Positions 10,275 to 34,636 of a stretch of DNA of 64,000 bases are shown here, piece by piece. A program made the translations under genes and the position numbers. This stretch comes from Eutreptiella sp. 'Long Island Sound 2002' (Eukaryota; Protista; Euglenida), in assembly GCA_964036045.1 (NCBI GenBank), contig OZ038378.1, positions 146,506,001 to 146,570,000 on the forward strand. The letters are read 5' to 3'. Numbering within the stretch: the stretch's first letter is position 1; each line of letters begins with the position of its first letter. A model generated the notes under the pieces. It ran no database searches and had not been told where the DNA came from. It worked only from the letters and a program-made list of their open reading frames with translations.

Positions 10275-11134
10275 TGACGCTTTAACATCCAGACACCTGG
10301 CAGAAATGAGAACTAGCATCCACTGGCTTTTATGTAGTAATGTGCCTAAGCAATCTTCATAAAACTTTCACCCATTGGCCAATACTGACTAAGAATGCAA
10401 AGACGTATCCTTACATTTTTATAAAGCGCGACAAAAATGTAACCGTGCATTCAAAACCCTGTACTGAAGATTTACCAAATTGCACTGCCCGCACGCACTT
10501 ACTTTTCATTTCCGTAGCCCTATGTCCGGAGGGCAAGGGGCTGGAGTGGTGGGCTGATCAAGAGTTCAGGCGCCTTCCTCCCTGTGTGCCCCCCCCCCCC
10601 CCCCACGCCGCCGATGGAGTACAGCCGCACAGAGCGACGAGGCGGTCAGGACTAAGTCTCTTCCAGGCCTGCGCTCCCGTGCAGCCGCCGCGACGGTACC
10701 TGCCCTCCCTCGGGGGAGGGGGGGGGGGGGGCATTGGGCGCCAAAGATGCGCCGGAAAACCTCCGGCACCACTGGGGCTGCGTCGGAGGGCCGTTGCCAC
10801 TTGTGGGGTGGCAGGAGGGGGGGGGGGGGGGGGCATGACGTCGCGTTTTGAATGCACCAGATGGTCCGTGATCCTGACCCCATCCCAGGCTCACTCAGTC
10901 CTCTCTGTTAGCCGGGCTGCTCTCCCAGCGCTCACCAGAACAGTGCCGAACGGTGCCTCGAGTTCACTGCAGCGCTGCCGCATTCGCATGTTGCGTGGGC
11001 TGTCTGGGTCGGCCCATCCCCCTCCCACGGCGCCGGTTAGCCACGGGATCGCAGCTTCTGGGACCCTTGAAAGAGTAGACATAGGGCGGTGCGCCGCCCC
11101 ACGTCACTGAGGGGGTAACGGAAGAACATGGGCA

Positions 11135-11499
11135 CCCCCCCCCCCTTTTGTATAAGCTACGCAAAAGTCCCAAATTAACACGGTCCCTACGCCTACTGTA
11201 GCTTGCACAAGGGCGTAGATGCCCGGGTTCAGAAAGAGAAGATTGCATGGCGAGCTGGTGCCAGAAAGGGGAATAGAATGCACAAATATCCCCAAAATCA
11301 GGGCTATGTGGGTTCAAGTGGGCAAACACTCACAAGAAACATGTCCATGACCCTATGTGACTGGCAAATTTGTCACCAAACCCATGTCTTATGTGGCCAC
11401 ACTACATTTGTACCAAATCAAATTAGGTACCAAATTAATACGGTCCCTACACCCGCTGTAGCTTAGACAAGGGCGTAGCTTATACAAGGGGGGGGGGGG
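11135..11499. mobile_element. MITE with poly-C/poly-G TIRs, copy 1
   Basis: TIRs (C)n-TTTTGTATAAGCTACGC ... GCGTAGCTTATACAA-(G)n, right flank TA. Aligns end to end with 24363-24729. Confidence 0.8.
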
Positions 11500-13317
11500 T
11501 ACCCGTGCATGAGGTGCCTCGGGAGGGTTGACACCTGCTCCCTCTGGCCGAAGGGGTAGGAGGGTCTGGAACCGCCGACTCGTGACTCGATAGCCACGCA
11601 TGATACCACCGACATCGGCCTTGCCGCTGTCCTGACTCGACACACAGCCTGTCGGCGGTTCACTGTCATTCCGTGACCTTGCCTCGCCTCCGAGGCACAC
11701 CACATCGAACAAATGCCCTGCCCTACCCCCATTCTGGACCCCTCCAGAACCGAATGGTACAATTCATGATTTTTAGACCCCCCCCCCCTATCCCCCGCCG
11801 CCATTGCCACGCTGTCCCCCGGGCTCGTGGAACTCTGTCAGTCCCAGCCGTCCCCATAGGCCCTCTACCACGACCACCACGACCGCCACCAGGCAGGAGG
11901 CGTGTTTCAAAGGGCCCCCCACTAGGTCCTGGGGGACACATATTACCTGGCCCGACTAGGTAGCCCCCCCGGCGGCCGAAGGGCGTCTAGTACCCGAAAC
12001 CTCAAACCTCAAACCTCAAACCTCTACCATGACTGTGTCATCGGTATTGGACCCGGAATCGTCCGATCGCGCCTCTGTGTTGGTTGACGACCCCGACCCC
12101 GAGCCTCCTCCTCCGGGCCTCGTTCTGACGGTTTCCCCAAATACTCTCCCTGACTGCCCAGGATGCCTGTCTGTGGGCACCTGACTCCCCCCCCTCTCCG
12201 CGTGCAAGGGCTCCAGAGCAACTCCTCGGCACGCAACCGTCACTCACCCGTACCCCGGGTCCCAGTTTCACAAATGGCACCCGCTCGTTTGGCGCGCCCA
12301 TGCGGTCCACCAGTTGCACCCGCAGGTCCATGTTCGACGTTGGGTCCGTTGGCGTTCACCATTGCGGTGGCTTCCACTGTTGCCTTTGATCCCCTATGCC
12401 TGTCACTACATCGTCCGACTGCAAAAAACAGTCTGGTAGGCCCCCAGCGTGTTGAGGGAATCAACGAGGGTACACAACCCCCACCGCGTTGGGGTTTCCA
12501 AAACAGTTCAAAAAATTCACAAAAAAAATTCCAAAAATGTTTCCAAAAATTCCAAAAAATTCCCAAAAATTTTCTCACAATTCCAAAAACGGGGTTCCCA
12601 AAGCGGTGGGGAAGCCAACCGGCTCCATAACCCCTGCGGTTTGGGGGCCCGGTGTGGGGGAGAAATCAGTGTGGCCAGGAAGGGTTGCCATAGGGGGGGC
12701 GGGAGTGAGACCTAATCAATTTGAATGCATTGTGATGGAGAAAACCAGACCTGCTGTGCAGCAAAAACGCAAAGTGCCATTGGGAGGGGGGGGGGGCGGG
12801 GGTTGAAACAGCTCTGCAACGCCAATGTTCACCGAAAAGAAACCCCGAACCTCACCACAAAAAGCCCCCAAGGGGTTTTCTGGTTCGAGTTTGGGGGGGG
12901 GGGGGGGGCGGTATGATGTGGTAAGGTACGGGGGGGGGGGGGTACTCGGCACCAAAAACAGGGGTTTCTTTGGTGCGTGCCCTCGGCGGACTGGCCATGG
13001 ACACGGCCCATCGCAGAGGGCGTGCCATCTCCCCACTCCACCCCCGGTGACCTGGCCAAGGGCAGGGCCCACACGCTACCAGAGGGAGCACGCCACTTCC
13101 CCCTTCCCGCCAGTGGCCGCTGGCAAACAGCAGGGCCAACTCCGTAGAGCGTGCGCTTGTCCGTCGTCCTGCAGCGCCGGACTGGCCATGCACGAGTAGC
13201 GGTGGGAGGTACGCTGCCCCCCCCCCCCCCCTCGCCCCCCACGTCGAGGCATCCCCCCCCCCGCCCGCCCCCCACGTCGAGGCCAAGCACCAACGGTCCC
13301 CGAGACAATTTTGGCTC

Positions 13318-14560: not shown

Positions 14561-14885
14561 GGGGTGGGGTACCTTCCCCCCTTCCCATACCTCCCTGGGG
14601 TAGGCTCTCCACTACGGGGTCCCAAATGGGGCCTATCGTCGGGTGTGTGCGCCGTGTGGGTGCAGGGCTTGCCCCCCCCGAAGGAACTCTGGGCTATTGC
14701 ACGCGTGCACAAGAGGCAGTCAGCACAAAGCGCGGAAAGAAATTTGGCTCGTCAGTGGCCTACAAGACCATAGGTACCTTTCTGTCAAAAGTGAGACACG
14801 AAGATGCCAGTGGGTTGGCCACTGAGCAGGCAAAGTTCACCAAAGGTGCAGCGGCAGCCCCCCCCCCCCCTCCGCCCGGATGGCC

Positions 14886-15892
14886 TCACTCCAGCGTGGT
14901 GTCGAACCCGCACGGCAGACTGTTCTGCTGGAACTCCGCCACGGACAGCCCGGCCCCGGCCACGGCCCACGCCACCTCCGCCCGGTCCTCGGCCAAGCAC
15001 CGGGCGACACACGCGACCCCGGAGCCGCGGACGCGGTGCTGCCCCGCGGCCCCCGCCCTCCTCCGCACCCACGGCCCCGCGTCGGTGCCGAGCAGCACGT
15101 GGGCCTCCCCCAGCGCCACCCCGCCCCGGATCGCGCCCGGGGCGCGCGCGTCCTCCGCGCACACGCCCCGGCGCCAGACCTTGTAGCCCCCGGTGGCGAG
15201 GGCCACGGCCACGGCCCCGGTAGGATCCGCCCCCCGCTCGGGGCCCACCCACGCCACCGCCGCGTCGTGTCGCGGCAGCGTCCACAGCAGCGCGAGGGTC
15301 CGGATGTCCAGCACCGCGGCGTCCCCGGCCTCGGAGCCGAGCCACAGCGCCGTGCCCGCCGCGTGCACCGCGCTGACCCCCGCCGCCCACGCGCCGTCCC
15401 GCACCCACGCGGGGGCGGGGCTCCGCACGTCCAGCGCGAGCAGCCCCCCGCGCGGGCCCCCGGCCACCGGCCCGGCCGCGGTCCACGTGGGCGTGAGCGC
15501 CGAGCCGCCCCACGGCAGCGCGACCGCGGCGGTGGCGCGCGCGTCGGGCGCGGCGTCCCAGACCGTCAGGCGGCCGGACCCCAAAGCGACGAACGTGCGG
15601 CCGCGGGAGGCGAGGCAGCGGACGGGCTCCGCCGCGGCGTCGCACGGCGGGCGGGCGGCGTCGCCGTGCTGCGCGTTCTGGAGCACGAGCCCGCCCCGGC
15701 CCCCGGCCGCCAGGGCGGTGGGGCCCACCCAGCACAGGGCCCGCACCTCCGCGTCCAGCGGCGGCAGGCACCGGACCGTGTAGCGGTTTCCGGTGTTGTC
15801 CTCCGGGTACGTGCGGACGGGGCGGCACCGCCGCCCAGCGAAGTACGGATTGGCGTCGTGTTGGCGACCGTTGCTGGTGCTGCTGGTGCTGG

Positions 15893-15927
<35 letters not shown>

Positions 15928-16862
15928 GTCTTGGCAGCGTCGTCGGTGCTGGCGGTCTTGGCAGCGTCGGCGGTGCTGGCGGTCTTGGCAGCGTCGGCGG
16001 TGCTGGCGGTCTTGGCAGCGTCGGCGGTGCTGGCGGTCTTGGCAGCGTCGGCGGTGCTGGCGGTCTTGGCAGCGTCGTCGGTGCTGGCGGTCTTGGCAGC
16101 GTCGGCGGTGCTGGCGGTCTTGGCAGCGTCGGCGGTGCTGGCGGTCTTGGCAGCGTCGGCGGTGCTGGCGGTCTTGGCAGCGTCGTCGGTGCTGGCGGTC
16201 TTGGCAGCGTCGGCGGTGCTGGCGGTCTTGGCAGCGTCGGCGGTGCTGGCGGTCTTGGCAGCGTCGGCGGTGCTGGCGGTCTTGGCAGCGTCGGCGGTGC
16301 TGGCGGTCTTGGCAGCGTCGGCGGTGCTGGCGGTCTTGGCAGCGTCGGCGGTGCTGGCGGTCTTGGCAGCGTCGGCGGTGCTGGCGGTCTTGGCAGCGTC
16401 GGCGGTGCTGGCGGTCTTGGCAGCGTCGGCGGTGCTGGAGTCGTCGTTGCTGCCGCTGCCACCGCCGCCGCCGCCGCCGCCGCTGTTGAGCTCCAAAGAG
16501 TGGGCCGCCGCCTGAGGCTGCGAGGGGCCCTGGGGATCTGTGGCCTGAGGGGGGCCGTTTGACGGGGCCCCGGCGCCGGGGGGCCGCGGCCCCACGGCCT
16601 CGTACACGTCCACCGTCGCGCAGAACACGGCGGTGCGCGGGGCCGGCGCGTAGGTCGTGTGGTCGGGGCAGATGGCCTGCGACGTCCCGGAGCACAGGGC
16701 GTCCAGCGGCTGGTCGCAGCGGAGGATGGGGACGTTGTGGGCCTTGGCGGCGTGGCGCAGCTTGCGGTCCACCGCGCCCAGGGCCTGGACCCACTGCAGG
16801 TGCGTCTGGGCCCCGCCCCCCACCGCCCGCACGCAGATGGGGTTGAAGATGAGGACAGGGGC
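14886..16862 (-). CDS. Last exon of the kinase-nitrilase-WD40 gene: C-terminal half of the CN-hydrolase domain, 9-aa repeat and WD40-like propeller
   Basis: Acceptor cctcgcag|GCC in phase 0. APVLIFNP...[10 protein letters not shown] completes the nitrilase fold. WD-like blades follow (VRCLAS, LTVWD, LDVRS, LDIRT, YKVW). 658 codons to TGA, high GC3. Confidence 0.8.
15924..16436 (-). repeat. Coding minisatellite, 19 x 27 bp (STADAAKTA)
   Basis: 513 bp. Units 10, 14 and 19 carry the variant STDDAAKTA. Confidence 0.95.
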
Positions 16863-17207
16863 CTGCGAGGCAGGGGCATCGGAAGGGGAGGAGGGGGGGG
16901 ACTTGCCCTCAGAGACGTGGGACGCAGCTGGGGACACAGGGGCCCTATGTAATCGGTTTTGGTGTCCCCTGCCGCGGGGGGGGGGGGGGGGGGATGCAAG
17001 TTGAGACGGCGAAAGATGCGATGGGGAAAAAAATGCAAACGAACGCATTTGTATTTTGTCCGCCCCCCTCGTCAAAATGGTGCACGTGACACAACCTTGT
17101 CCATGGATGGCCACAATACAAGGAAACTGAAGGCAAGACAGAAGCCAAACAAAATGCGCAAAAAACATGCATTTGCATCCCCCCCACCCCCCTGCCCCCG
17201 CTTTGGA

Positions 17208-17435
17208 GCACAAGGCCTCGGTCTCTGATTGTTTGCCTTTGGCGGCGCCTATGTGCCTCTCGCCACTGCTCATTCTGACCCTCTGTGGGTCCGAACGTGT
17301 TTTGGTTGTGTCAACGGAGCCCGCGGATGACTTGTCCTGTTTGACTACTCCGGGGGGTCGGCCGTCCCGGAGACGGGCTGTTGGCTTGTGCCGTTGACCA
17401 GGGGCATCCAGATGCACAATCCGAGTCCGTGCGGG
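17208..17435 (+). repeat. Dispersed repeat family B, copy 1 (intronic)
   Basis: CACAAGGCCTCGGT...GCCACTGCTCATTCTGACCCTCTGTGGG...GACTACTCCGGGG is shared with 21440-21660, with a fragment at 21343-21372. Confidence 0.85.
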
Positions 17436-18112
17436 GGTTTGGCGACCCCAGCACTGACTTGAGCGCGCTGGGGTGTGCGTCTGCAGGATCATGTTCCTGA
17501 CAGGGGCTTCTAACACCCACAATGATTCTTTCCCGGTTTTCCTTTCCTTCGGGGGGGGGGGGACCCCAACATATACGGCGCGAAATGATACCCACGTCGT
17601 GCTGATCGTTTTGACTACACATTTGTGGGGGAAAACTTTCGGTGGAAAAAACTTTTTCGGGCCCAAATTTGTGTTCCGGCGCCTTCAGCGCCAACATAGA
17701 TTGCTGCACAAAACAAAGGGCCCGGCACGGAAGCCCATCCCCCCCCCGCGCGCCTTCAGGGGGCATCCGTGCTCTGCCCCGCCCCCCAACCCCCCGCCCC
17801 CCTGGAGCAATTGTCAGACCGCCCACACATCACATGGATTGATTGCACAAATCTGAGGCCTGCCTTGATGGCTTCCACAGAGGTCTCCGGTGCCAAACCG
17901 CATAGTCGCAGGCATGGCGGCCGTCCACTGGGGGGTCCACTGGGGGCGCGCGCGCGCGCGCGTGCGTGTGGTCCGTGCGTCTGTGTGTCTGTGCGAGTGT
18001 GTGCGTATCTGTGTGTGCGGGTGTGAAGGGGTGAGGGTGTGGGATCGACGGCATCAGCCGGCCTCCATCCTCCGAAGCGCTGCAACGAGCCTCCTCCACA
18101 AGGCCAGCGTAC

Positions 18113-20753
18113 CTGATCCAGCGTCTCCTGCAGCAGCGCCCGGTCCTCGATGTCGAAGCAGATGAGGATGCCGCACGCGCCCTTGTCCGTGTGGATGATC
18201 CCGACGTCGGCCCCGGGGCAGCCCTCGGCGCGGCTCGTCAGGTTGCGCTTGCGGTACGCGCCGATGACGCCCCCGTTGCGGCCCAGGGCCACGCACGTCA
18301 CGTAGCGGCGGCCGTCGGGGCCGACCTCCGGCAGCGTGCCCAGGAGGGCGTGCACGCGGTGCGCCCGGCAGAGGGCGGCCATGGCCTGCACCGCCGGGAC
18401 CGCGTGCAGCGCCCCCGTGCGGCCCTCCTCCGTGATCCACCCCTCGGGAACAGCAGGAAGTCCAGCGGCTCGCCGGACGTCGCGCGGTGCGTCGCGAGGG
18501 CGGCGCGCACGAGGGCGAGGGACTCGTCGGTCGGGCCCGACGGGACCTGGAAGACCAGCACCCGCACCGCGTCGCGGTGCGCGTGGGCGGTGCCTAGCGG
18601 GCACGGCGGGGCCGGCGGGGGCGGGGGCGCGGGGCGCCGCCACGTCCCGTCCGGCGACCGCTGCCACGCGCCGGAGGCCGCGGCGCCCGCCGGCGGAGGG
18701 GGCGGGGGGGCGGGGGGCGCGGAGGGAGGACAGGGGGGGGCGGGGGGGGCGGGGGGCGCGGAGGGAGGACAGGGGGGGGCGGGGGGGGTCGGGGCCGCAG
18801 GGGGGGCGGCGGCTCGAGGGCGGCGCAGACCGCGCCCGCCTCCAGCCCCGCGGCGGCGAGCTCCTCCCGCAGCACCGCCCACACCCCCTCGAGGTACGCG
18901 GCGCTGATGCGCCCGCAGCCCGCGGCCCACACGTCCTGCCAGTCCTCCTCCGCCATGGCCCCCAGGCCCTCTTTGAGGCGGAGCAGGGGCGCGGGCCCCA
19001 ACGCGACGAAGGCGCCGACGCACGCGACCATCCCCCGCGCGACGCACGCGGCCGCGCCGGGGCCCAGGACGGCCGCGTGCTCGGGCCCGGCCACCGCCTC
19101 GAGAACGCTCCGGACGTACGGGTTGGCCCCGATGGCGGGGTCGCGGAGCTGCGCGGGGCCGGGGCCGGCGAAGGCCGGCAGAAGGGAGCGCAGGAGGGTG
19201 CGCAGGCGGCGGCAGTAGGCCGCGTAGGTGTCCGGGTGCTGGACGGGGTCGATGGTGGTGACGGCGCAGTCGACGAGATACAGGCGGTGGTCCAGCGCGT
19301 TGCAGATGACGTTGCCGGGGTTGCCCAGGTTGTCCCACAGGTCCGCGCACGGGAGGCTGTCGCCGTTGTTGATGACCGCGTTGAAGAGCACCGCCCGCCC
19401 CACGTGGTACATCGCGCAGTCCGCTGCGCGCGCGTGCGGCGCGCCGCACGCCAGTGCCGCGACGCGCGCGCCCGCCTGCAGGCTGCGCCCGGGCACCCGC
19501 TGCTGCACCGTCAGCTGCGGGCGGTTGAGGCCCTTGTCCAGGGCGCGGGCCATGACCACTGCGTCGGCGCCGGAGGCCGGGAGGCCCCGCACGGCGGCCC
19601 GGAGGTCGTGCCAGGGCTGCGACGGCCAGAACGCCACGGCGGAGGTCGGGTGGGGCACGCGCAGCAGGTCCGCCAGCGCGGCCGCGTACGCCTCCTGCGC
19701 GACGGTGGCCGAGCCCTTCAGAACGCGGTGGTGGTCCGCGAAGTCGATGAAGAAGACGGTGCCCGAGGCCCCCTCCTCCGGCCGCGCGATGGAGAGCGCG
19801 CCGTCCCACACGAGCAGTTCCGCCGCCGTGGGGCGGCGCGTGTGGCACGTGCGCTGCGGCGGGGGCGGCGGGGGGGCCGGGGGCGCGGCCTTGAGGCGGA
19901 AGGGGACGCCGACCGGGGGCGGGGGGGGCGCGGGGGGCGGGGGGGCCGTCGGGGGGGTGTCACCGCCGGCGGTGTGCGTGGGAGCGGGGGCTGAGGGCGG
20001 TGGAGGGGGCGGTGGAGGGGGCGGGGCGGCGGAGGGCCTCTGTCCGACGACGCTTCCGGCGTTCGGGGGTGGCGGCGGCGGTGGAGGGGGCGGGGGCGAG
20101 GGCGGGGGGGCGGACGGAGGAGGCGGCGGAGCGCACGCGGCCGAACGGGGCTCTGGGGTCCGGGCCGGGGGCGGCGGCGAGGGGGCGGGGGGGGGCGACG
20201 CCGGGGGGTCGGGCGGGGGACCGGCGTCGCAGGGGACGTCCCCGAACGCCGCGGGCCAGCGGCGCCGCGCCGCCGCGGCCCACGCCCCCCACGCGGCCCG
20301 CACGGCCCCGCACAGGTCCGCGGGCAGCGGGACCCCGCCCTCGGCCACGCTCAGGCGGTGCAGCGCGGCCCACACGGTGGCGTTCGTGCGCGGCTCCACG
20401 AGCGGGAGCGCCCTCAGGCGCGCGACGGCGGCGCGCGCGAGCGACTTGCTCTCGGCGCGGCCCTCCGCCGCGTCGCCCGCGCCGCGCGCGAGGCCGGTCA
20501 CGATCCGGTGCACGAGGCCGTGCAGGCCCTCGGCCTCGCGGCGGTACCGGCCGAGGATGTCCCGCAGCCAGTCCGGGTCGGCGGCGGCAGGGGGCAGGGC
20601 CAGGGAGGCGTGCTCCCCGTCCAGCGTCCGCAGCACCGCCGCGGCGTAGGCGCTGCAGTTCTCGCGGATCGCGCGGTACTGGTCGTCGGTGGCGGTCTGC
20701 TCCTGCGGCAACACTTTGTGGTCTTCGGAGGTGCGGATGTGGAGGAGGTGCAC
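18113..20753 (-). CDS. Central exon: Pro-rich linker, actin-fragmin-kinase-like domain, Pro-rich linker, N-terminal half of the CN-hydrolase domain (two 1-nt frameshifts)
   Basis: Acceptor ctgcag|GTG and donor CAG|GTACGC, both phase 0. AFK motifs: EEGASGTVFF, VLK, QE, NNGDSLP, GNPGNV, LVD. Nitrilase triad: FPEG, YRKRNL, ICFD. Continuity needs +1 nt at ~18800-18806 and at ~18446. Confidence 0.8.
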
Positions 20754-20904
20754 CTGCAGTCCCGCGGGGGTGGGGGGGGGTTGAGGTAGAGGCAGGTCCC
20801 CGGCGCCAGGGCACCATCACGCGTCACAGGCCCCAGGACGGGCCCCCGCCCGGGGGCCAACGGGCTGTTGGTCAAGCGCTAGGCGACCGAACTACACGAC
20901 CGCC

Positions 20905-21075
20905 GTGGGCAGTGATTCGGAGGAAAGGGACCTCAGAGGCGGCCCCAGCAGCGGTTAGGCAGGCGGTTGGAGGAGGTTGCCGAAGCGGTTGGGGGGCGGT
21001 TACTGTCGGTTACAAATGCCATTGAGGCTGGCACTTGGCGTCAGGGGGACAGTGGCTGGGCATAGGCTGGGCCCT
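20905..21075 (+). repeat. Dispersed repeat family A, copy 2 (intronic)
   Basis: Aligns with 14395-14560. Confidence 0.8.
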
Positions 21076-21439
21076 CACCCCCTTCCGATGCATCTCTGGC
21101 ATTGGGTCATGGCCCATGCAGCGCTTGAAGGGTCGGGGGGAGGGGGGTGCTCCCCGCCCTTTGGCGGGACGGACAGCCCTGCCGTCGGGCTTCCGTCCGT
21201 CCCTAACGTGGTCGCCCCGGCCACGGGCCATCGCCGGCCCACAGCCCTGAGCCCAGACACGGGGCATGCCACATGCTGCCCACCCCTTTTCCGCGGGGAC
21301 GGAACAGCCCCCGCCGGAAGGACGCCAGGGGGGGGGGGAGAGGGTTGGCACAAGGCCTCGGTATTCGGTTGTTTGCGAAGGAGGGCCTGGGCGAGAGCGA
21401 GGGCCCCAAGGCCCGTCACCGGCATCACCGGGTGGGGTT

Positions 21440-21660
21440 GGCACAAAGCCTCGGTATCTGATTGTGTGCCTTTGGCAGCGCCTATGTGCCTCTCGCCACT
21501 GCTCATTCTGACCCTCTGTGGGCCTGAACGTGTTTTGGTTGTGTCAACGGAGCCCCCGGATGACTTGTCCTGTTTGACTACTCCGGGGGTCGGCCGTCCC
21601 GGAGACGGGGCTGTTGCCCATGCCGTTGACCAGGTGCATCCAGAGGCACACTCCGAGTCC
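21440..21660 (+). repeat. Dispersed repeat family B, copy 2 (intronic)
   Basis: Aligns with 17208-17435. Confidence 0.85.
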
Positions 21661-22027
21661 GAACCCCGGGAGACCCCGGGTTCGAACCCTGGGGCCGTCA
21701 CGACCCCCCGGGGCAGTGGCGCGGGGGCGGGAGGCGCATGCGGGGCCAATGAAGCGAGGGGCGGTCTGGGGCACCCCCTGACGGACGAGGGCAGTGCTGT
21801 GCAGGCCAAGCGATCGCACATCGCTTGGCACTGCACAGCACTGCCAGACCTCTGCAGGCACCGGTCATCTCTGTGGGGTGTGCCGTGGGGGGACGCCGGT
21901 GGGTGGGGCGTAGGGGAGGGCAGCCGTGGGGGTCAAGGGCGAAGCTGGATCAGGCCATTGCTGAGGCACCCCCCCCCGACCGGGGGGGGGGGGTTCGGGG
22001 TCCTGCCAGACCCCAGCCGACTCCCTG

Positions 22028-22331
22028 TGTGACATTCCGTCCGGTTGTTGCTCCTTTACGGGGCCCTGGACAGTCACCCGCTCTTCCCTTCGCATGTTGC
22101 GTCGGGTCGCTGCGTTCTGTCGGCCGCTGCGGCCGGTGCTCCCGCTGGTGTCGTTTCCGCGTTCGCGGAGCCCAGTAGTTGGTGTGCTGGGGCTGCGCTG
22201 AATGTGGCGGGATGTGCCGTTTGCGTGTCAGCGGCGCCCAATAGTTGGCGTATTGAGGATGTGCTGGTTGTTGCCGGGGTCGTTTGACTGTTTTTGCTGT
22301 CCACACACCTCTGTCCACAGGCCGTCCATAG
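22028..22331 (+). repeat. Dispersed repeat family C, copy 1 (intronic)
   Basis: GTGACATTCCGTC...GGTCGCTGCGTTCTGTCGGCCGCTGCGGCC...CCACAGGCCGTCCATA is shared with 23318-23620. Confidence 0.9.
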
Positions 22332-22568
22332 CCTGCCTCGCTGTGTTTCTGTGCGGCCCAGGTGCCCTGTTCCCCCCCTCAGTCCCGCGCAACAAAAGTG
22401 ACATTCAAAAAAAAAAAAAAAAAAAAAAAAAGAGGCCCGGAATTGGAGGCCGATTTCAGGGACACAAACTTGTTTTTGGCCTCTGACAACGGGCCTGGGC
22501 AGGGGGTGGGACGCAAGGGGGCGGGGCATACGGTGGGGCCCCGCGATGAGAAGCACGGGACGAGGCAC

Positions 22569-22985
22569 CTCAGTCTCCGGAAGCGACCGCATCCAGAAGC
22601 AGAACAACGCGAACTCGCAGTGCAGCACGTGGGCCACCTCCTCGTGGTCCCCCTCCGCGATGCTGCGCCCCACGGCCGGGCTGGCGTACGCGGCGCTCGA
22701 AAGCCCCGGGACCAGCAGCCCGAACTCGGCGAGCTGGTTGTCGACGAAGACCACCGCCTCGAACAGGCCGCTGCCGCTCAGCGCGCGCACGACGCTCAGC
22801 TTCGACTCGTTCTCCAGTCGCACGCTCAGCGGGGACGGAGGGAGCGCGGACCCGCGGATGCTGATGCCCAGGGCCCCGTCAAGCGTGAAGCCCCGGTCCC
22901 TCGAGAGCTTGAAGACGTGCTCGCTTCCCTCGCCGATGCCGAAGTAGGGGCGGAACTCCGCCAGGACCGGCTGGTGGAGACCACC
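22569..22985 (-). CDS. Upstream exon of the kinase-nitrilase-WD40 gene (139 aa, unassigned domain)
   Basis: Acceptor tttctag|GGT after a (CCCT)n tract and donor GAG|GTGCCT. 417 nt, phase 0-0, high GC3, and it joins the 20753 exon in frame. Confidence 0.7.
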
Positions 22986-22992
22986 CTAGAAA

Positions 22993-23162
22993 GGGAGGGA
23001 GGGAGGGATGGAGGGAGGGATGGAGGGAGGGAGGGAGGGAGGGAGGGAGGGAGGGAGGGAGGGAGGGAGGGAGGGAGGGAGGGAGGGAGGGAGGGAGGGA
23101 GGGAGGGAGGGAGGGAGGGAGGGAGGGAGGGAGGGAGGGAGGGAGGGAGGGAGGGAGGGAGG
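22993..23162. repeat. (GGGA)n/(CCCT)n microsatellite, about 42 units
   Basis: Near-perfect tetranucleotide run directly upstream of the 22985 acceptor on the minus strand. Confidence 0.95.
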
Positions 23163-23317
23163 GGGCCGGGTGCCAAGAGCCCCGGTTTGACGGAGATGGA
23201 GGTGCTGCGCACCATACCCGGAGTGAGAGGGCCCATCGGGGGCGGGGGGTGGGGGGTATGGATACCGTTCCTTGCCTCCCATGACGCCTTGTTCTAGGAG
23301 CATACCCCCCCGCCCCG

Positions 23318-23620
23318 TGTGACATTCCGTCGGGTTGTTGTTCCTTTACGGGGCCCTGGACAGTCACCCGTTCTTCCCTTCGCATGTTGCGTCGGGTCGC
23401 TGCGTTCTGTCGGCCGCTGCGGCCGGTGCTCTTGCTGGTGTCGTTTCCGCGTTCGCGGAGCCCCGTCGTTGGTGTGCCGGGGCTGTGCTGGATGTGGCGG
23501 GATGTGCCGTTTGCGCGTCAACGGCGCCCAGTAGTTGGCGTATTGGGGGTTGTGCTGGTTGTTGCCGGGGTCGTTTGACTGTTTTTGCTGCCCACACACC
23601 TCCGTCCACAGGCCGTCCAT
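23318..23620 (+). repeat. Dispersed repeat family C, copy 2
   Basis: Aligns with 22028-22331. Confidence 0.9.
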
Positions 23621-23799
23621 ACCACCACCACCCCACACACACCGCAGCGGGTATCAAAGGTTCCTGTTGTTTCAGGGCCTTGGAGCCCCGCGTGTGGACT
23701 GCATTGCCAAATCGCCCCCTCGCCTCCTCGCACGCCACGGGACCAGCCCGGGCTTCACCGCGACACAACAAAGGCACATCGCAAAACGCTGCAACGCAC

Positions 23800-23959
23800 C
23801 CTCATTTGAGGGTTGTCAAGAGGTCTGCGTGAAGGTACAACGGCACTCTGCATGAGTGCACTAGGGAGGGGCCCCAACAAACGTGCAGTGGAACTGCAGA
23901 CATGCGTACAGTACTCGAAATATGTGGGGTCCACGAGAACATGCTCTTGGAGATCCACT
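23800..23959 (-). CDS. Candidate further upstream exon of the same gene
   Basis: Reads VDLQEHVLVDPTYFEYC...PQMR and ends at a phase-0 AGG|GTGCGT donor compatible with the 22985 acceptor. Its own acceptor is weak and GC3 is lower. Confidence 0.3.
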
Positions 23960-24362
23960 CTTCACTTGCACCTGGGCCTTGGACCACAACGTGTGCGTGC
24001 GTGCGAGTACGCACTCGAAAAAAGGATATGCTCTGCCCAAGACGAAGTGCAAAGAGAGGGAAATGGACGCTCAGAATTGTGTGCACAAGTTGCTCATCAC
24101 TTGTCTCACAGCCTGAATGAACCATTGGTTCTGCCCAGTGCTCGCCATTTGTGAAGTTGTTCCTTCGCGGTGCAGCAAAGTGCAACAAGAAGTTCGCACC
24201 AATCCTGAGCTGCCTTGTCCTTTTCCATCGTGCCACACTTTGCATGGGGCTGTGGTAAACCAGGGGCTTGGCTAATGCCCGCCTGGGAATCTGCCAGGCA
24301 ATCGACGGTTGTGGTGCAATGGACACCGTGTGTGCGGCATCGGCGTCTGGTACCATTTAGTA

Positions 24363-24729
24363 CCCCCCCCCCCCCTTTGTATAAGCTACGCAAAAGTCCC
24401 AAATTAACACGGTCCCTACGCCTACTGTAGCTTGGACAAGGGCGTAGACGCCCGGGTTCACAAAGAGAAGATTGCCTGGTGAGCTGGTGCGAGAAAGGGG
24501 AATAGAATGCACAAATATCCCCAAAATAAGAGCTCTGTGGGTTCAATTGGGCAAACACTCACAGCAAATGTGTCCATGACCCTACGTGACTGGCAAATTT
24601 GTCACCAACCCCATGTCTCATGTGGCCACACTACATTTGTACTGAATCAAATTAGGTACCAAATTACTACGGTCCCCACGCCTACTGTAGCTTGGACAAG
24701 GGCGTAGCTTATACAAAGGGGGGGGGGGG
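24363..24729. mobile_element. MITE with poly-C/poly-G TIRs, copy 2
   Basis: TA on both flanks (24361-62 and 24730-31). Same TIRs and interior as 11135-11499. Confidence 0.85.
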
Positions 24730-25804
24730 TATGATGAACGGGGTTTGGGCAGGGTCTCGGGGGCGGTTGTGGTGCTCTTGGCCAAGGGCTTTGGGGTTGG
24801 TTTCGATGGAGGGCATGGTCGGATGAATGCGCACCACAACCCTTGAGTGCCTCCTTGAACATCCTTCATCTGGGCTCAAAGGGGTTATCACTGGATGACG
24901 CAGACCGCCTTTGAGGATGATGAACCGAGCTATTGAGTGACACCATCCAAGAACCACTGAGTTGCCTTGAAAAATGCATTAGAGCTCATAGTGTTGTGGG
25001 AAAACAGCATTTCGGGTGAAGAAACCAAAAAAAACGGCCTTTTTTGTTTTATAAAAAAAAACCTAACCTCATCTAACCACTGTTTTTGGTGTCGGGGTGT
25101 CGCCGGTGTCCGGGACACCCGTTTCGCTCATCCCTTGTGATGCACTGCAAAGGACGTCCGTGAACACCCGTTTGACGGGATACAGTGGCCCTGGTGACGC
25201 TGATACCGACCGGCGAAAGGGACTGACAACGGCAACCAGCAGGAGCAGGCAAAGCAAACTGGATGAACAGGGCACAAGAACAGGCACACACGGCCCATGC
25301 AAGCAAGCCACACCCCACGGGATCACCGCCTCGACGGGTCTATACATGGCCCTTCCGGGCTATTGTTGGGTCTGGTGGCAGTGGTGGGGTCAGCCGGCGG
25401 CCTAACGGAGCGGGCTGGGGGGGGGGGGGGGGCTGGGTTCAGCATAGGGGTGATGGATGGCGGCCACCGAACTGGCTGTGTGATCCGCCAAGAAAAAAGT
25501 AAAAGGAATTCAAAGAACATTGCTTGGCAACACACTCTTCTGTTTTCCTTTTGCTCCAGGACTGCCATCAGGGGATGTGGACAGTGTTCCACAAAGGAGA
25601 GCCACACATCTTGGAGCACCGTCCTGTAGATGTCATGGTTGGGCTCCCTGTGTGTAGGACCTTGCCCCAACCGGGAATCGAACCTGGTACCCAAGGCGGC
25701 GCACAGACCACCTCAATCACCAAACCTGGTAGCTCAAGGCGGGAATGTGACCGGTGCCGTAATGAAAAAAAAAAAAACTCGGAGTGTCCAATACGCCCTA
25801 CAAT

Positions 25805-25903
25805 GGCGGTTGGTGGGTAACCGATGCGGTTGGTGGGTAACCGATGGCGGTTGGTGGGTACCCGATGGCGGTTGGTGGGTAACCGATGGCGGTTGGTGGG
25901 TAG
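25805..25903. repeat. About 5 x 21-bp tandem GGCGGTTGGTGGGTAACCGAT
   Basis: Directly visible. Related units occur at ~14160-14215 and ~59445-59500. Confidence 0.85.
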
Positions 25904-26523
25904 CCACCAAACATCAGAGAGTGGATGTGATAGTAAAAAAAAAGGGGTGAGCGTCCTTATGGCACCCCCTGATGTGACCTATCGTTGACGCTTATTTCCA
26001 GAGAACATGCCTTCACCGCAACGATGGCTCAAGCCCTGATGCCAGCTGCACTATTCTGGGCCCAGAGGGCCTGGAGCAGAAGAGGGGGTGGGGTGGGGTG
26101 GGGCATTGGGTTGACCGAGCCGGGGATCCGTGACCCAACCCCAGGAGCAGGCGAAGGACCCAAAGAGTTGCTGCCTGAGCAATGGCGTTGCCTGTCGCAG
26201 TACAAAGAGGCGAGCGGAGACTGCTGCGAGCCGCACGCATCTGAAGACAGACTGACAGTCGGACAGACAAGTGGGCAGGCGGGCAGGCAGACGAAAAGAG
26301 AGGGTGGGCCTGAGTGGGGGGGGGGCAGCAAAGGAGGAAGGGGAGAAGGCAGGCAGCAGAGGGGGCAGGCAGGTCGGAAGTGGGGACGAGAGGCAGAGCG
26401 AGAGTAAAAGATGAGAGTTGGGGAACAAGACGGAGGGGGGAGGGGCATCAAGGTGCGAGAGGAGAGAGAGGGGGGGGAGGGAGATACGCACAGACATACA
26501 TCTGGACAAATACACACACAAAC

Positions 26524-27410
<887 letters not shown>

Positions 27411-27411
<1 letters not shown>

Positions 27412-30400
27412 TGGTACCATCCTGGGCGCTCCTAGGGTCTCAGTCCGCGTTCAGGCTGAGATCGGGAGTGCTGTTACAGGGTGGAGTACCGTCAGGCCAT
27501 CCCCGGGTAGCACGGGAGATGGTGGGGCAACCCCTGGCTTCCCTTGTTGCGGGGGTGACCGGTTTATGGGGTGTGTGTCTTAAGTCCCTGGGTGCTACAT
27601 TGGGTACTGGTTTCCAGGCTGTTTGGGTGTTGGTGGGGTGGAGCACGGCCAAGGGCCTGGTTCGTTAAGCACAGCACTTTGGCTGAAGCGGTTCACTGAT
27701 CTGGTGCTGCATGCCTGCCACTCCTTGTGATTTGTTGTCAGGCAACAATGGGGTTCGTGGGGAGTGATCATTCGCGCTATGGTGCAGTTTTAACACATGC
27801 AGCAGTGGGACTTCGAAGGAAGATATGGGGCAACGAGGGTTAGAAAGTCCTCATGGAGGAGATCGAGTTTGGCGTCTTGCTATTTTGCTGCAGTCTGTTT
27901 TCTCGGCTCGCGCCGGTTACAGTCAGCAGAACTTCGACTTGTGCCAGGTGTGTGCAGTGTGGTGTCAAAGGGAGTGGGCAGAATACGGAGGGGACAAGAG
28001 TGAGTGGCACGAGTTCAGAACATTCGCTCCAGCAGGGAGATAAAGGGCCTAGCCGTGACTCAGGTTCGGGGGTCCTCCGGCTTCAGGGCTCAATCCGCGA
28101 CCCCACTCGGTGGGAGTCCTCCGGAGACCACCGGTACACAGGGCGGCTGCGACTCATAATCAGTGGTCCTCCAGCCAGCGTCCGGTGATCTGGTGGTTCA
28201 GAACGGGCTGCGACTTCCCGAGGGAGGTCCTCCAGCCAGTGGCAGGAAGGCACACAGGACGCGAAGGCACACAGGACGCGGCATCTGGACGCCGGATCCC
28301 TTGAACCTTGGGCGACCCCCCCCCTGGTGCCCAAAACAAACACAACGGTCAATCTTTGGCCGAACCAGGGGGGTTAGCTCAGGGGGACGGGGTGATGGTT
28401 CTGCCACTGCCCTCAAGCCAGCGTCGGGTGATCTGGTGGTTCAGGACGGGCTGCGACTTCCCGAGGGAGGTCCTCCAGCCAGTGGCAGGAGGGCACACAG
28501 GAATTCTGAGCCGCGGCATTGTAACTGTGCCCTCCGGCTAGAATTACAGCGTGACCGCGACCCTCTCAGTAGGGTGTCCTCTGGCAGTCGGAAGTCATAA
28601 CGGGACGTGACACTCTTCTCTGCGCTTATCTCAGGATGTCTATCGGCAAGGACGCGTGGAAGAAGCTACAGGCATCAGCAAAGCGGGACAGCCTCAATGG
28701 GTACGACCTGTGGCCGATCGACTCAGTGGCCCGTGGCAAAGACAAGGAGCTCCTGATCACCGGGGTGCACAGGCCATCTGGCGAGAACGTGCTGTCTGTG
28801 CCGATACGGGAAAACCTGATCCATACTCTGGCGTTCTTCTGGTTTTTTATTTCTGGCAACGCCTCCGACACTCAGCGGGCCTGGGTGCAAGATGCAGAGC
28901 CTGATCGATCGGTGTGGAGCATTTACACGCTGCTGCGAGATCTTCAAGCTCAGCTGGACACCATCACCACGGTTGAGGCGGCTGGGAAGTGGCAGGCCAA
29001 CATCATAGAGGAATGCGATTGTCCGGGACTTCGAGGGCAATTGGCGGCTCTACCGTTGGAGGATTTCCTGACGACTTTGGACGCAACGAATCTGAAGGTG
29101 AGCCCACAAACCGACGTAGTACGACTTTGGTACTGACTTTGGTACTTTGGTACAAAGTACTGATGGGGTCAAAGATCGACAGGACCTACTCATCATTGTT
29201 TGAGTATACTAAGGATGGTCAGGGTCTGTTGTCCGTGCTCACGAAATTCTGGAGCAAGAAGACGGCTCTGGAACAGGCGGATATTGAGGACGATTTGATC
29301 TCATGGATAGGAGTGATCAGAGAGGAGTTTGGGGAGAGTGACGCTACCAAGAGCAAGCAAGACACCCTGAGCCGCATGCGATGAAGGCCTGGGCGGTCAG
29401 ATGTGCGGCTGATGGAAAGGATTTGGACTGGTCGAGCTTCATCATGAGTGGATCTATGGAGTTAAATTCTCACGACGACGACGAGCATAGTGAGCTTATG
29501 TCCGTGCTCTTGACTCGGGGGTTGACAAGGCCGTAGTGGGGTCGGAGGCTCAGGAGCAGACGACCAGGAAGATGTTCATCATGGCTGTCACGAAGTGTAA
29601 AACCAACGAAAGGAGGGCAGAGCTAGCAGAGGGTTCGAGAAAGTGGCTGGCCACGTCTCCGAGAGCAAAAAGGCGGCAGAGTCGTTCCTCAAGGCAAGAG
29701 TAGGACAGTATGGGGCAGTGGAGCTGCCCACAGGGAGAGTGCGGGTAGCCCAGCAGGATGGCAGGACAGTCATCAGGGTGGCCTGGATGACCTCGACGGA
29801 GGCATCGTTGACTGATGTGCGGGTATTTATAGAGAAGGTATTCGGTCAGGCAATGGCACTGAACGAAAAGCCTGAGCGACATGGTTGGGGACTACTCAGA
29901 GTACCCCAGTCCCAGTTGGACAAACTACTGGGAGAGGACCCTCAGCGCTCGTTTGTTTCTGATGACCAGAAGGTGGAGCTGGACGTTAGGTCCAGGAACT
30001 CAGCCAAGGGGAAGTATTTCATGGACGCGAATCACTGGGCAGCAATGGCCCTGAGCGAGTAAGTGGTGCGTCGCCGACCGATTCCAGAGCCGGAGATCCA
30101 GGATGACGTCAAGCGAAGAAGAGTGACTGATGGAGCGGGATCCTATCAAAGAGGAACTGGGCGCTGACGCCAGCACTTAAAGGTCGTCTGAGTCAGTTGC
30201 AGCATTAACGAATCGCAGGGTCGGCCCAGGAACAGTGCTCATCAGCGCAGTTTCGCGGCTTCAGGCGATCCACTTCATTATATTTTATTTTCCTATTTTT
30301 ATTTTTCAAGTACACTCAAGAGAGGCAGATCAACATGCACGGTCCGAGTGTTAGAGCACGAGAGTGCAGGCCACACAAAGAAGGCCGCAGACACCCAGTA

Positions 30401-30858
30401 TTTATTTTCTTTAACATTATTTATTTCAGCGGCTTAAGCACAGCGACAGCGGACACCCACCAGCTCAGACGAGCCACTCAGGAGACTCAATGAGTGGCGC
30501 ATTTGGCGGGCGTTTTGGTAGAGTCGCACTGTGCCAGGGCTTGCTCAGGGTGACAGAGGGTGGAGAGAGGGCAATGGAGAGGACTCAGCAAGGTTCATTG
30601 AGACTTCGGGTTGAGGTGGCGGAAGAACAATCAACAATAACAAAGAATTAAATTCTCAACAGAAATCGAGAGCGGGGCACAGGACCACTCAAGGGGCGAA
30701 TGGAGCCAGCACACTTTCTGGGGAGCTAATTTTTTTTTTTAGGAAAAACAGATACGCAATTAAGCACTAAAGGGGACCAATACAGAAGCCCATGCAGCGG
30801 GACTGGGGGTGAGAGCAGGAGCCACTGTAGTCTCGAAAGCAACAGCATCAGGAGCCAG
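27411..30858 (+). mobile_element. Internally deleted LINE copy A1 (5'UTR, broken ORF1, most of the 3' end)
   Basis: Collinear with 33371-36496 and then 41916-42613. It has a 345-bp deletion in ORF1 and a 5.4-kb deletion removing almost all of ORF2, plus small frameshifts and stops. Confidence 0.92.
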
Positions 30859-31893
30859 CAGAGAGATAAAGGGCCTAGCCGTGACTCTGGTTCGGGGGTC
30901 CTCCGGCATCAGAGCTCAATCCGCGGACCCCACTCGGTGGGAGTCCTCCGGAGACCACCAGTACAATGAGCGGCTGCGACTCATAATCAGTGGTCCTCCA
31001 GCCAGCGTCGGGTGATCTGGTAGTTCAGGACGGGCTGCGACTCCCCAAGGAGGGTCCTCCAGCCAGTGGCAAGAATGCACACAGGAATTCTCAGCCGCGG
31101 CATTGTTACTGTGCCCTCCGGCTAAAATTAAAGCGTGACCGCGACCCCTCTCAGTAGGGTGTCCTCCGGCAAGGGGAACAGGGTTCCTGAACAGGTATGA
31201 TGCAGGAGCAGAGAGCCGGACCACGTGTTGTTGCGGTATCACAAGGAATCGTCGGCGGGACAGAATGGAGATCAAGCGAGCATTGGCAATGGAGCCGGAA
31301 AGGGACGGCATGGCCCATCCGGTTGGGGCAAAGGTCGTGGCACTGGCGCAGGAGCGGGTCGGGGCAAGTTTTGACTCCCGGCATGGGCTGCCGGCGACTT
31401 GCCTGGTGAGTGCGCCCCTCGTCGAAGTACTGCAGGTCATGGCAGGATATGGTGTGACTCGTAGGGACCTGGCAGGGGACATCTGGTGGGAAAAATTGTC
31501 TCAGGCGCAGAAGGAGGCATGGGCCACAGGGTATGCTGAAAGTAAAGGTCCCATGGCGTGCTGGGACTGTGGAGAGGTGCAAGAGGAGGACTTGGAACGA
31601 TTCCATTGCTTCATCTGCGGGCGGAACATCAGGAATGACATTTCAGCATTTTCAGCATTTCAGCACTAAAGGAGGACCAACACTGGAAGCCCGTGCATCG
31701 GTACTGGGGGTGTGAGCAGGAGCCACTGTAGTCTCGCAAGCAAAAGCATCAGGAGCCAGTGGGGGCTCCACCACCAGGACTTAAGGGGCACACCCTACGC
31801 AGCCCGGCGGGGCGACTAGGGTTTTCAATGACCTCCAGGGGCACACGTGGAGGCCTGCATAAGCAGCGGCCCAGCAAAGACAAGACAAGACAA
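30859..31893 (+). mobile_element. Deleted, more divergent LINE copy A2 fused to A1
   Basis: Mosaic matching 33971-34520 (one 5'UTR monomer), ~36486-36950 and ~42515-42752. Ends in (GACAA)3 followed by (GA)n. Confidence 0.88.
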
Positions 31894-31919
31894 GAGAGAG
31901 AGAGAGAGAGAGAGGGAGA

Positions 31920-31979
<60 letters not shown>

Positions 31980-31999
31980 GAGAGAGACTGAGAGGGAGG

Positions 32000-32040
<41 letters not shown>

Positions 32041-32088
32041 AGAGAGAGAGAGAGAGAGAGAGAGACTGAGAGAGAGAGAGAGAGAGAG

Positions 32089-32150
<62 letters not shown>

Positions 32151-32187
32151 TGAGAGAGAGAGAGAGAGACTAAGAGAGAGAGAGAGA

Positions 32188-32239
<52 letters not shown>

Positions 32240-32291
32240 GAGCGAGAGAGAGAGACTGAGAGAGAGAGAGAGAGACTGAGAGAGAGAGAGA

Positions 32292-32356
<65 letters not shown>

Positions 32357-32445
32357 TGAGAGAGAGAGACTGAGAGAGAGAGAGAGAGACTGAGAGAGAG
32401 AGAGAGAGAGAGAGGGAAGAGAGACTGAGAGAGAGAGAGAGAGAG

Positions 32446-32485
<40 letters not shown>

Positions 32486-32502
32486 AGAGAGAGAGAGAGA
32501 CT

Positions 32503-32536
<34 letters not shown>

Positions 32537-32582
32537 CTGAGAGAGAGAGAGAGAGAGACTGAGAGAGAGAGAGAGAGAGACT

Positions 32583-32616
<34 letters not shown>

Positions 32617-32662
32617 CTGAGAGAGAGAGAGAGAGAGAGACTGAGAGAGAGAGAGAGAGAGT

Positions 32663-32715
<53 letters not shown>

Positions 32716-32761
32716 TGAGAGAGAGAGACTGAGAGAGAGAGACTGAGAGAGAGAGAGAGAG

Positions 32762-32795
<34 letters not shown>

Positions 32796-32813
32796 AGAGA
32801 GAGAGAGAGAGAG

Positions 32814-32857
<44 letters not shown>

Positions 32858-32874
32858 AGAGAGAGAGAGAGACT

Positions 32875-32908
<34 letters not shown>

Positions 32909-32954
32909 CTGAGAGAGAGAGAGAGAGAGACTGAGAGAGAGAGAGAGAGAGACT

Positions 32955-32988
<34 letters not shown>

Positions 32989-33013
32989 CTGAGAGAGAGA
33001 GAGAGAGAGAGAC

Positions 33014-33099
<86 letters not shown>

Positions 33100-33100
33100 G

Positions 33101-33175
<75 letters not shown>

Positions 33176-33200
33176 AGAGAGAGAGAGAGAGAGTGAGAGC

Positions 33201-33279
<79 letters not shown>

Positions 33280-33301
33280 AGAGAGAGAGAGAGAGAGAAG
33301 A

Positions 33302-33338
<37 letters not shown>

Positions 33339-33370
33339 AGAAGAAGAAGAGAGAGAGAGAGAGAGAGAGA
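31894..33370. repeat. 1477-bp (GA)n tract between LINE copies
   Basis: GA run with recurring GACT interruptions. Confidence 0.97.
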
Positions 33371-34110
33371 CTGGTACTGGTGGCTCAGCCGCGGCGCTCG
33401 GGACTGCTGTTACAGGGTGGAGTACCGTCAGGCCATCCCCGAGTAGCACGGGAGATGGTGGGGCAACCCCTGGCTTCCCTTGTTGCGGGGGTGACCGGTT
33501 TATGGGGTGTGTGTCTTAAGTCCCTGGGTGCTACATTGGGTACTGGTTCCCAGGCTGTTTGGGTGTTGGTGGGGTGGAGCACGGCCACGGGCCTGGTTCG
33601 TTAAGCACAGCACTTTGGCTGAAGCGGTTCACTGATCTGGTGCTGCATGCCTGCCACTCCTTGTGATTTGTTGTCAGGCAACAATGGGGTTCGTGGGGAG
33701 TGATCATTTGCGCATGGTGCAGTTTTAACACATGCAGCAGTGGGGACTTTCCAGGAAGATGTGGGGCAACGAGGGTTAGAAAGTCCTCATGGAGGAGATC
33801 GATTTTGGCGTCCTGCTTTTTTTGCTGCAGTCTGTTTTTCTCGGCTCGTGCCGGTTACAGTCAGCAGAACTTCGACTTGTGCCAGGTGTGTGCAGTGTGG
33901 TGTCAAAGGGAGTGGGCAGAATACGGAGGGGACAGGAATGAGTGGCAGGAGTTCAGAACATTCGCTCCAGCAGGGAGATAAAGGGCCTAGCCGTGACTCA
34001 GGTTCGGGGTCCTCCGGCTTCAGGGCTCAATCCGCGACCCCACTCGGTGGGAGTCCTCCGGAGACCACCGGTACACAGGGCGGCTGCGACTCATAATCAG
34101 TGGTCCTCCA

Positions 34111-34444: not shown

Positions 34445-34636
34445 CGCGGCATTGTAACTGTGCCCTCCGGCTAGAATTACAGCGTGACCGCGACCCCTCT
34501 CAGTAGGGTGTCCTCCGGCAGTCGGAAGTCATAACGGGACGTGACCTCAAGGGGTGGAACACCAGCCAGACGACTAGGTTCAGGTAATCGTGCGATCTGC
34601 CCTCTATTCAGCACTCTTCTCTGCGCTTATCTCAGG

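Follow-up and report, generated by a model that had tools for sequence, protein, structure and literature searches.

A probable actin-fragmin-kinase, amidase and propeller fusion gene in Eutreptiella, with relatives in several eukaryotic supergroups

The actin-fragmin kinase (AFK) of Physarum phosphorylates actin at Thr202/203 in the actin-fragmin complex, and its propeller is of the Kelch type. Only two roles have been characterised for AFK-type kinases: the control of actin capping in slime moulds and the stress-induced disassembly of microtubules in plants. In PHS1 of plants and Chlamydomonas, an AFK-like domain serves as a tubulin kinase that acts on α-tubulin and is fused to a phosphatase-like domain (PMC8783414). 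Here we analyze a locus of the euglenid Eutreptiella sp. 'Long Island Sound 2002' that lies in a stretch of 64,000 nucleotides (assembly GCA_964036045.1, contig OZ038378.1, positions 146,506,001 to 146,570,000), referred to below as the window, with positions counted from its first letter. From the letters alone, this locus had been predicted to encode an AFK-like kinase joined to a nitrilase-type carbon-nitrogen hydrolase (CN_hydrolase) and a WD40-like propeller. We consider it probable that the locus is one protein-coding gene on the minus strand, with at least four exons and a product of ~1,769 aa, that it belongs to a conserved family of AFK, CN_hydrolase and propeller proteins, and that miscalled homopolymers in the assembly, and not biology, account for both breaks of its reading frame in the window.

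Domains of the predicted protein and their family

Read from its N-terminus, the protein is likely to consist of a probable HAD-like module, a helical region, a poly-Pro tract, the AFK kinase, a second poly-Pro tract, a Nit-like CN_hydrolase, a spacer of 19 repeats of 9 aa and a divergent beta-propeller. The GC content of the region is 0.66-0.78, and all features of the gene lie on the minus strand. The original prediction had placed three phase-0 exons with GT-AG junctions here, and each of them was verified: exon E1 (22569-22985, 139 codons), exon E2 (18113-20753, with 2,641 nt in the window, one more than a multiple of three) and exon E3 (14886-16862, 658 codons followed by a TGA at 14888-14886). 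All of their splice borders are canonical, phase-0 junctions (...GAG/GT at 22569/22568, CAG/G at 20754/20753, CAG/GTACGC at 18113/18112 and CGCAG/G at 16863/16862). Intron 1 (20754-22568, GT...AG) is packed with high-copy repeats, with a k-mer depth of up to 1e4-1e6 in runs X1 and X2, and intron 2 (16863-18112, GTACGC...CGCAG) interrupts the CN_hydrolase domain. In the predicted frames the G+C content of third codon positions (GC3) is 0.93-0.99 and that of second positions (GC2) is ~0.5, which is far from chance; in E1 the values are 0.935 and 0.457, respectively. A scan of the whole window for GC3 periodicity marked 22531-22995, 20281-20775, 18766-19875, 18406-18630, 18106-18450 and 14851-16920, all on the minus strand, and nothing else between 22995 and 48946. 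An open stretch of 740 codons, read from stop to stop at 20816-18597, holds the AFK domain. No RNA family was found in an Rfam scan of the whole window.

The AFK-type atypical protein kinase domain occupies 18882-19823. It matched Pfam PF09192 (Act-Frag_cataly) with an E value of 3.3e-15 and 56.7 bits against a cutoff of 24, and it matched Physarum AFK (PDB 1CJA) directly (E 8e-4), with the NNxD...GN...D motifs aligned. Family profiles were built in three parts from the members described below and searched against unjoined stop-to-stop translations; the kinase part matched 19823-18882 (E 6e-42, positions 10-307 of 309). Residues K68, N184, N185, D187, N203 and D217, which are invariant across 12 sequences, are all present in the window kinase. 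The AFK-like kinase with its K, E, D, N and D residues was thus borne out by the Pfam score and by the residues themselves. Both of the predicted poly-Pro tracts are also present, the first (~19830-20190) between the helix-rich region and the kinase, the second (18600-18815) as a linker between the kinase and the amidase.

The amidase domain is encoded in two parts. Its N-terminal part (18113-18585) contains a Glu (in FPE), a Lys (in YRKR) and a Cys (in ICFD) that correspond in the alignment to the catalytic triad of the relatives, and its C-terminal part (16596-16862) contains the motifs NP, RCD and a GSSQ-like motif. Pfam PF00795 (CN_hydrolase) matched the window frame 18508-17759 with 32.8 bits (E 6.1e-8) and positions 6591-7073 of L001, the corresponding contig of another assembly, with 41.3 bits (E 1.5e-10, profile positions 4-152), in both cases above the cutoff of 23.2; the C-terminal part alone had no Pfam match. 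The family amidase profile matched the E2 part at positions 55-211 (E 4e-35, in L001; window equivalent 18585-18113) and the E3 part, at 16868-16596, at positions 210-302 of 307 (E 4e-19). The two halves meet at profile positions 211/210, with '...ETLDQ' and 'APVLIFNP...' in adjacent alignment columns, and therefore the intron at 18112-16863 and the predicted split of the domain by it are confirmed. The Glu-Lys-Cys triad had been described as intact. This is correct for Lys and Cys, while the Glu codon is split in the window as written and whole only with an extra C at 18445 (see below).

Between the amidase and the C-terminus, the predicted 19x repeat was found as 19.2 copies of a 27-bp unit at 15920-16438 (TRF, 98% matches), each encoding TADAAKTAS. 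The repeat is flanked by Gly and Ser runs, its copy number is identical in L001, with no gap there, and it reads as a low-complexity spacer. The C-terminal domain (14889-15872, ~328 aa) opens with R-x-x-R-T-x-x-x-D-N-T-G-x-R-Y and ends with F-x-Q-N; compared with the family, the opening motif gave a profile match with an E value of 8.5e-4 and an hhalign probability of 74%. The WD40-like propeller predicted here was not recovered by Pfam, in which no family matched these 328 aa significantly; the best WD40 match had an E value of 0.11 (12 bits), and Kelch gave no match. An AlphaFold2 model made with nine homologues was all-beta, with runs of four strands, and when this low-confidence model was submitted to Foldseek the best 50 matches were all beta-propellers (WD40, BamB and designed; E ~1e-6, TM 0.40-0.45). 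Together the model and the homologues suggest that the domain is probably a divergent beta-propeller.

The combination of these domains is not confined to Eutreptiella. At least 14 database clusters carry AFK and CN_hydrolase, usually followed by a WD40-like propeller. Ten long matches from the kinase search were scanned with Pfam, and eight of them have Act-Frag_cataly and then CN_hydrolase; three of these eight (P0028, P0037 and P0042) show sub-threshold WD40-family matches at the C-terminus, in the same position as the window domain. Another of the ten, P0035, is PHS1-like, with AFK and DSPc. The named sources are Pigoraptor chileana, Mastigamoeba balamuthi, Polykrikos kofoidii and another dinoflagellate, in addition to marine and other metagenomes. 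The Pigoraptor and dinoflagellate entries are single open reading frames (ORFs) derived from transcriptomes, and therefore the fusion sits on one mRNA in those organisms. An alignment of ten members revealed invariant kinase residues (K, D..N.., GN..N and D), invariant amidase residues (E, K and C) and a common motif, R-x-R-T-x-x-x-D-N-T-G-x-R-Y, after the amidase. The window gene has the domain order of the family, the motif RxRTxxxDNTGxRY after the amidase and the C-terminal FxQN, and the family profiles found five more kinase and amidase clusters outside the set from which they were built. In a kinase tree the amidase-bearing proteins did not form one clade and 12 changes were needed, many of the rows of 300-400 aa being probably fragments, so that the tree speaks neither for nor against a single origin. 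In a word-index protein search the amidase had no match, and the family alignment and the kinase found only their own cluster, as poly-Pro words had probably filled the candidate list.

As judged from these sequences, AFK kinase, CN_hydrolase and propeller form a conserved, functionally unstudied family across several eukaryotic supergroups that is already present, unannotated, in the databases. The original prediction had presented the architecture as one for which no description was known to its author. We found no paper that links AFK with a nitrilase or carbon-nitrogen hydrolase or discusses such an architecture, and the Dictyostelium kinome paper, which lists four AFK homologues, mentions no such fusion; the architecture is, however, not unique to this locus. 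One member, P0154 (988 aa), is apparently intron-free and lies at positions 10001-12967 of L002 (ENA ERZ28563591, scaffold_5665), a eukaryotic metagenome contig of 22.8 kb, between VPS13 and WD40 genes; it would suit expression as a compact homologue.

Upstream exon and N-terminal module

Exon E1 starts directly after (CCCT)43...CTTTCTAG, and its first ATG lies only eight codons before its end; exon E2 has no ATG ahead of the kinase. E1 matches the N-terminal extension of P0052, a relative of 1,281 aa encoded by a single ORF on a 4.7-kb ENA metagenome contig (L003), at aa 131-216 (phmmer, E 2e-9). When P0052 was searched against the window by tblastn, collinear minus-strand matches were obtained: residues 32-90 matched 43130-42963 (39% identity, E 2e-6), residues 146-227 matched E1, residues 501-658 the kinase, residues 1010-1028 the Cys motif of the amidase and residues 1141-1157 the DNTG-like motif. 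The first of these matches reveals a putative first coding exon, E0 (42948-43220, 91 codons), with an ATG at 43220 and a donor CAG/GTTTTC at 42948/42947. Its ATG sits ten bases past a pyrimidine-rich ...CCTCAG and aligns with Met1 of P0052; E0 as a whole aligns with residues 1-107, E0 and E1 abut on P0052, and the first residue of E2 aligns with residue 275, with weak collinearity to aa 275-440 (E 0.005). The gene would thus start at E0, ~20 kb upstream of E1, and the predicted protein length of ~1,680 aa is replaced by ~1,769 aa, since E0 adds the start.

The intron between E0 and E1 (22986-42947, ~20 kb) is inferred to end in the (CCCT)43 tract and a TAG acceptor. This tract, (AGGG)43 at 22992-23163 on the forward strand, is directly upstream of the E1 acceptor and may act as an extreme polypyrimidine tract. 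An array of LINE elements (26524-42915) lies wholly within the inferred intron. In and around the introns of the gene there are also pairs of dispersed repeats that are 93-94% identical (17208-17429 and 21441-21661; 22023-22330 and 23313-23621; 11134-11501 and 24364-24731), and the k-mer depth in runs X1 and X2 reaches 1e4 to 2e6 over 17200-17800, 20800-21800 and 22000-22400, which indicates very high-copy elements. In this genome the first exon of a gene can thus be concealed upstream of 20 kb of intron that is full of transposable elements. An ORF with ankyrin repeats further upstream (48905-50017, minus strand; Ank_2, E 2e-38) was considered as an additional exon and rejected because the ATG of E0 aligns with Met1 of P0052; we judged it to be a separate gene.

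The motifs VWDVDDT in E0 (DxDxT) and VVFVDNQL in E1 resemble motifs I and IV of HAD phosphatases. Pfam gave only DUF2608 (E 0.1) on P0052 and no match on E1, a PDB sequence search with the N-terminal module gave no match, and an Atlas feature search scored HAD families at 0.87-0.90, which serves as a lead only. On this weak evidence the N-terminal module is probably HAD-phosphatase-like, with E1 as its second half. The helix-rich region that follows (20190-20753, the N-terminal part of E2) had no Pfam match, and all its scores in the Atlas feature search were below 0.85.

Frame breaks and alternative readings

The original prediction had reached its ~1,680 aa after two 1-nt corrections. An exhaustive protein search found an ORF of 900 aa (P0001) from another assembly with 100% identity over the 351-aa kinase query. 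The contig that carries it, L001 (ENA ERZ25074135), is 99.9% identical to window 25182-8054. The alignment has a single mismatch and 11 gap openings, and almost all of the indels are in G, C or T homopolymers, at ~0.6 sites per kb. In the coding region there are only three differences between the assemblies, in each of which L001 has one more C: at 18799 (C7 versus C8), at 18771 (C8 versus C9) and at 18445 (CCC versus CCCC). The extra C at 18445 links '...DFLLFP' with 'EGWITEEG...' and thereby creates the FPE motif that holds the catalytic Glu. The same base is inserted in a contig of run X2 at a depth of 40, while the low-depth contigs of run X1 break at 18445. Because the extra C is found both in L001 and in the X2 contig, the break at 18445 is an assembly error: one C is missing from the window.

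The second correction falls in the C-runs of the poly-Pro linker. With the C at 18445 and a single further C, placed in only one of the runs at 18799 and 18771, E2 becomes a stop-free exon of 2,643 nt (881 codons) that ends with ...ETLDQ at the donor. The linker contains a direct repeat of 39 nt whose second copy has C8 in both assemblies, which internally favours C8 at 18771. In the X2 contig that covers 18782-19092 there is just one additional base, and we infer that it belongs to 18799. The 39-nt repeat and the X2 contig together favour C8 at both runs as the candidate placement. If exactly one linker C-run gains one base, kinase, amidase and propeller share one open frame and thus one polypeptide, and the letters TAG at 18594-18596 fall across two codons (CTA GGC), out of frame. 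More generally, a frame break at a G or C homopolymer of this assembly should count as a possible sequence error until it has been checked.

If the frameshift in the linker were real, the locus could be a pseudogene, with a product that is limited to the kinase part or absent altogether. The frame is interrupted between kinase and amidase in both assemblies (net 0 and net +2), and Ser replaces the Arg188 that directly follows the catalytic-loop Asp in at least 90% of the relatives. However, GC3 is 0.97 and there is no stop over the ~1,680 codons that follow E0, no catalytic residue is lost, the break at 18445 was shown to be an assembly error, and the assemblies disagree only at homopolymers at the low density given above. 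We consider a pseudogene quite unlikely. Two adjacent genes, a kinase gene ending at the TAG and an amidase-propeller gene after it, would account for the stop that is read at 18594-18596 in the kinase frame of the window. Against this, no ATG lies in the amidase frame upstream of its first conserved strand, the coding GC3 signal (~0.97) continues without interruption over the linker and both frame changes, the close architectural relatives are without exception single ORFs, in part transcriptome-derived, and the length of E2 as written, from one phase-0 splice site to the other, is 1 mod 3; this arrangement appears highly unlikely. Finally, the cell might handle the frame change in the linker by a short non-conventional intron or by programmed frameshifting of the ribosome within the C-rich tract. 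Euglenids have non-canonical introns and there is an AG at 18594-18595, but such a mechanism is hardly to be expected, as nothing demands it once a homopolymer error is allowed, no intron-like base-pairing or slippery site was identified in the linker, and the relatives translate a linker of similar length and Pro content.

Several points weigh against the reading as one intact fusion gene with the domains described here. In addition to the out-of-frame linker in both assemblies and the Ser in place of Arg188, the contigs of X1 and X2 break within the C-rich linker and none spans 18727-18799, and the L001 assembly and run X2 possibly share reads and are then not fully independent. No RNA-recorded run covers the locus, and the small 2013 runs X3 and X4 place nothing there. 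The GC3 of E0 is 0.71, as opposed to 0.93-0.99 in the other exons, and its placement rests on a single 59-aa match. The C-terminal model is of poor confidence (predicted local distance difference test score, pLDDT, 50; predicted template modelling score, pTM, 0.45), and for the N-terminal module AlphaFold2, given residues 1-260 of P0052 aligned with E0 and E1, yielded an unusable model with a pLDDT of 32. Every functional step proposed below is an analogy.

Elsewhere in the window, an open frame on the plus strand (57650-59362) carries a SAM domain (E 1.7e-9) together with an Aa_trans amino-acid transporter (E 6e-66), an unusual pairing.

Possible function and comparison with known systems

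Apart from the Ser in place of Arg188 in the kinase, both enzyme domains keep their catalytic residues, and the predicted 'kinase coupled to amidase' is, from sequence, a fair reading. It agrees with the architecture and the key residues; the gene model on which it had been based lacked a start, and the fusion is not peculiar to this genome. The cytoskeletal link that had been proposed can be drawn by inference only, from the two characterised relatives, Physarum AFK (actin) and plant PHS1 (α-tubulin). By analogy with these, the propeller and the poly-Pro tracts might dock a protein partner, most likely a cytoskeletal one, which the kinase would then phosphorylate on Ser/Thr. The substrate of the amidase would be a non-peptide amide, which could belong to the same partner, in a deamidation, or to a small ligand, and the HAD-like module may supply an opposing phosphatase, like the phosphatase domain of PHS1. 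A role in a small-molecule pathway would be an alternative. Taken to its furthest extent, the family might be an ancient eukaryotic machine of two enzymes in which one cytoskeletal substrate (actin or tubulin) is both phosphorylated and deamidated (or de-acylated), with the euglenozoan version having added a HAD-type phosphatase to make a self-contained write/erase module that arose independently of PHS1; we regard this as unlikely. The permanent fusion of an AFK kinase with a propeller and with an amidase that appears to be active, conserved among amoebae, dinoflagellates, euglenids and animal relatives, points to an unstudied step of protein modification or metabolism. Selection has kept the kinase and the amidase together in these lineages, and the family provides concrete proteins for cloning and assay.

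Compared with Physarum AFK, the protein has a kinase of the same atypical family (PF09192), followed by a probable C-terminal beta-propeller where Physarum AFK also has one. The putative propeller here is divergent and WD40-like, with no Kelch match, and Physarum AFK is without a CN_hydrolase, a HAD-like N-terminus and long poly-Pro tracts; the identity is ~20-25%. PHS1 of plants and green algae similarly fuses an AFK-like kinase to another enzyme domain and is a precedent for a kinase of this type that acts on a cytoskeletal protein other than actin (PMC8783414). DSPc, the dual-specificity phosphatase domain of PHS1, had no Pfam match in any exon, and instead of a domain resembling MAPK phosphatases the kinase here is joined to an amidase of the nitrilase type, a probable propeller and possibly a HAD-type module. 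For the amidase, the best solved matches to the family profile are from the Nit branch (yeast Nit3, 1F89, E 2.7e-21; mouse Nit2, 2W1V, 1e-13). The Glu-Lys-Cys triad is common to both groups, but only the N-terminal ~150 positions align and the C-terminal half of the family has its own motifs (NP, RCD and GSSQ); moreover, the known enzymes of the Nit branch are free-standing and have small-molecule substrates.

The closest match in architecture is found among unnamed fusion proteins such as M. balamuthi EP00727_P011700 ('putative actinfragmin kinase'), P. chileana EP01137_P008440, P. kofoidii EP00927_P060120 and the metagenomic P0037 ('predicted amidohydrolase'). They have the same domain order, catalytic residues, DNTGxRY after the amidase and C-terminal FxQN. 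They differ in their length of 800-1,200 aa, the identity is 24-31%, and most of them are without the N-terminal extension, the 19x repeat and the very long poly-Pro. P0052 is the sole relative that is collinear with E0, E1, E2 and E3. Its identity is 28-39% and its amidase is weakly recognisable (E 1e-5), while its kinase groups with the window kinase and a diplonemid sequence (SH-aLRT 90).

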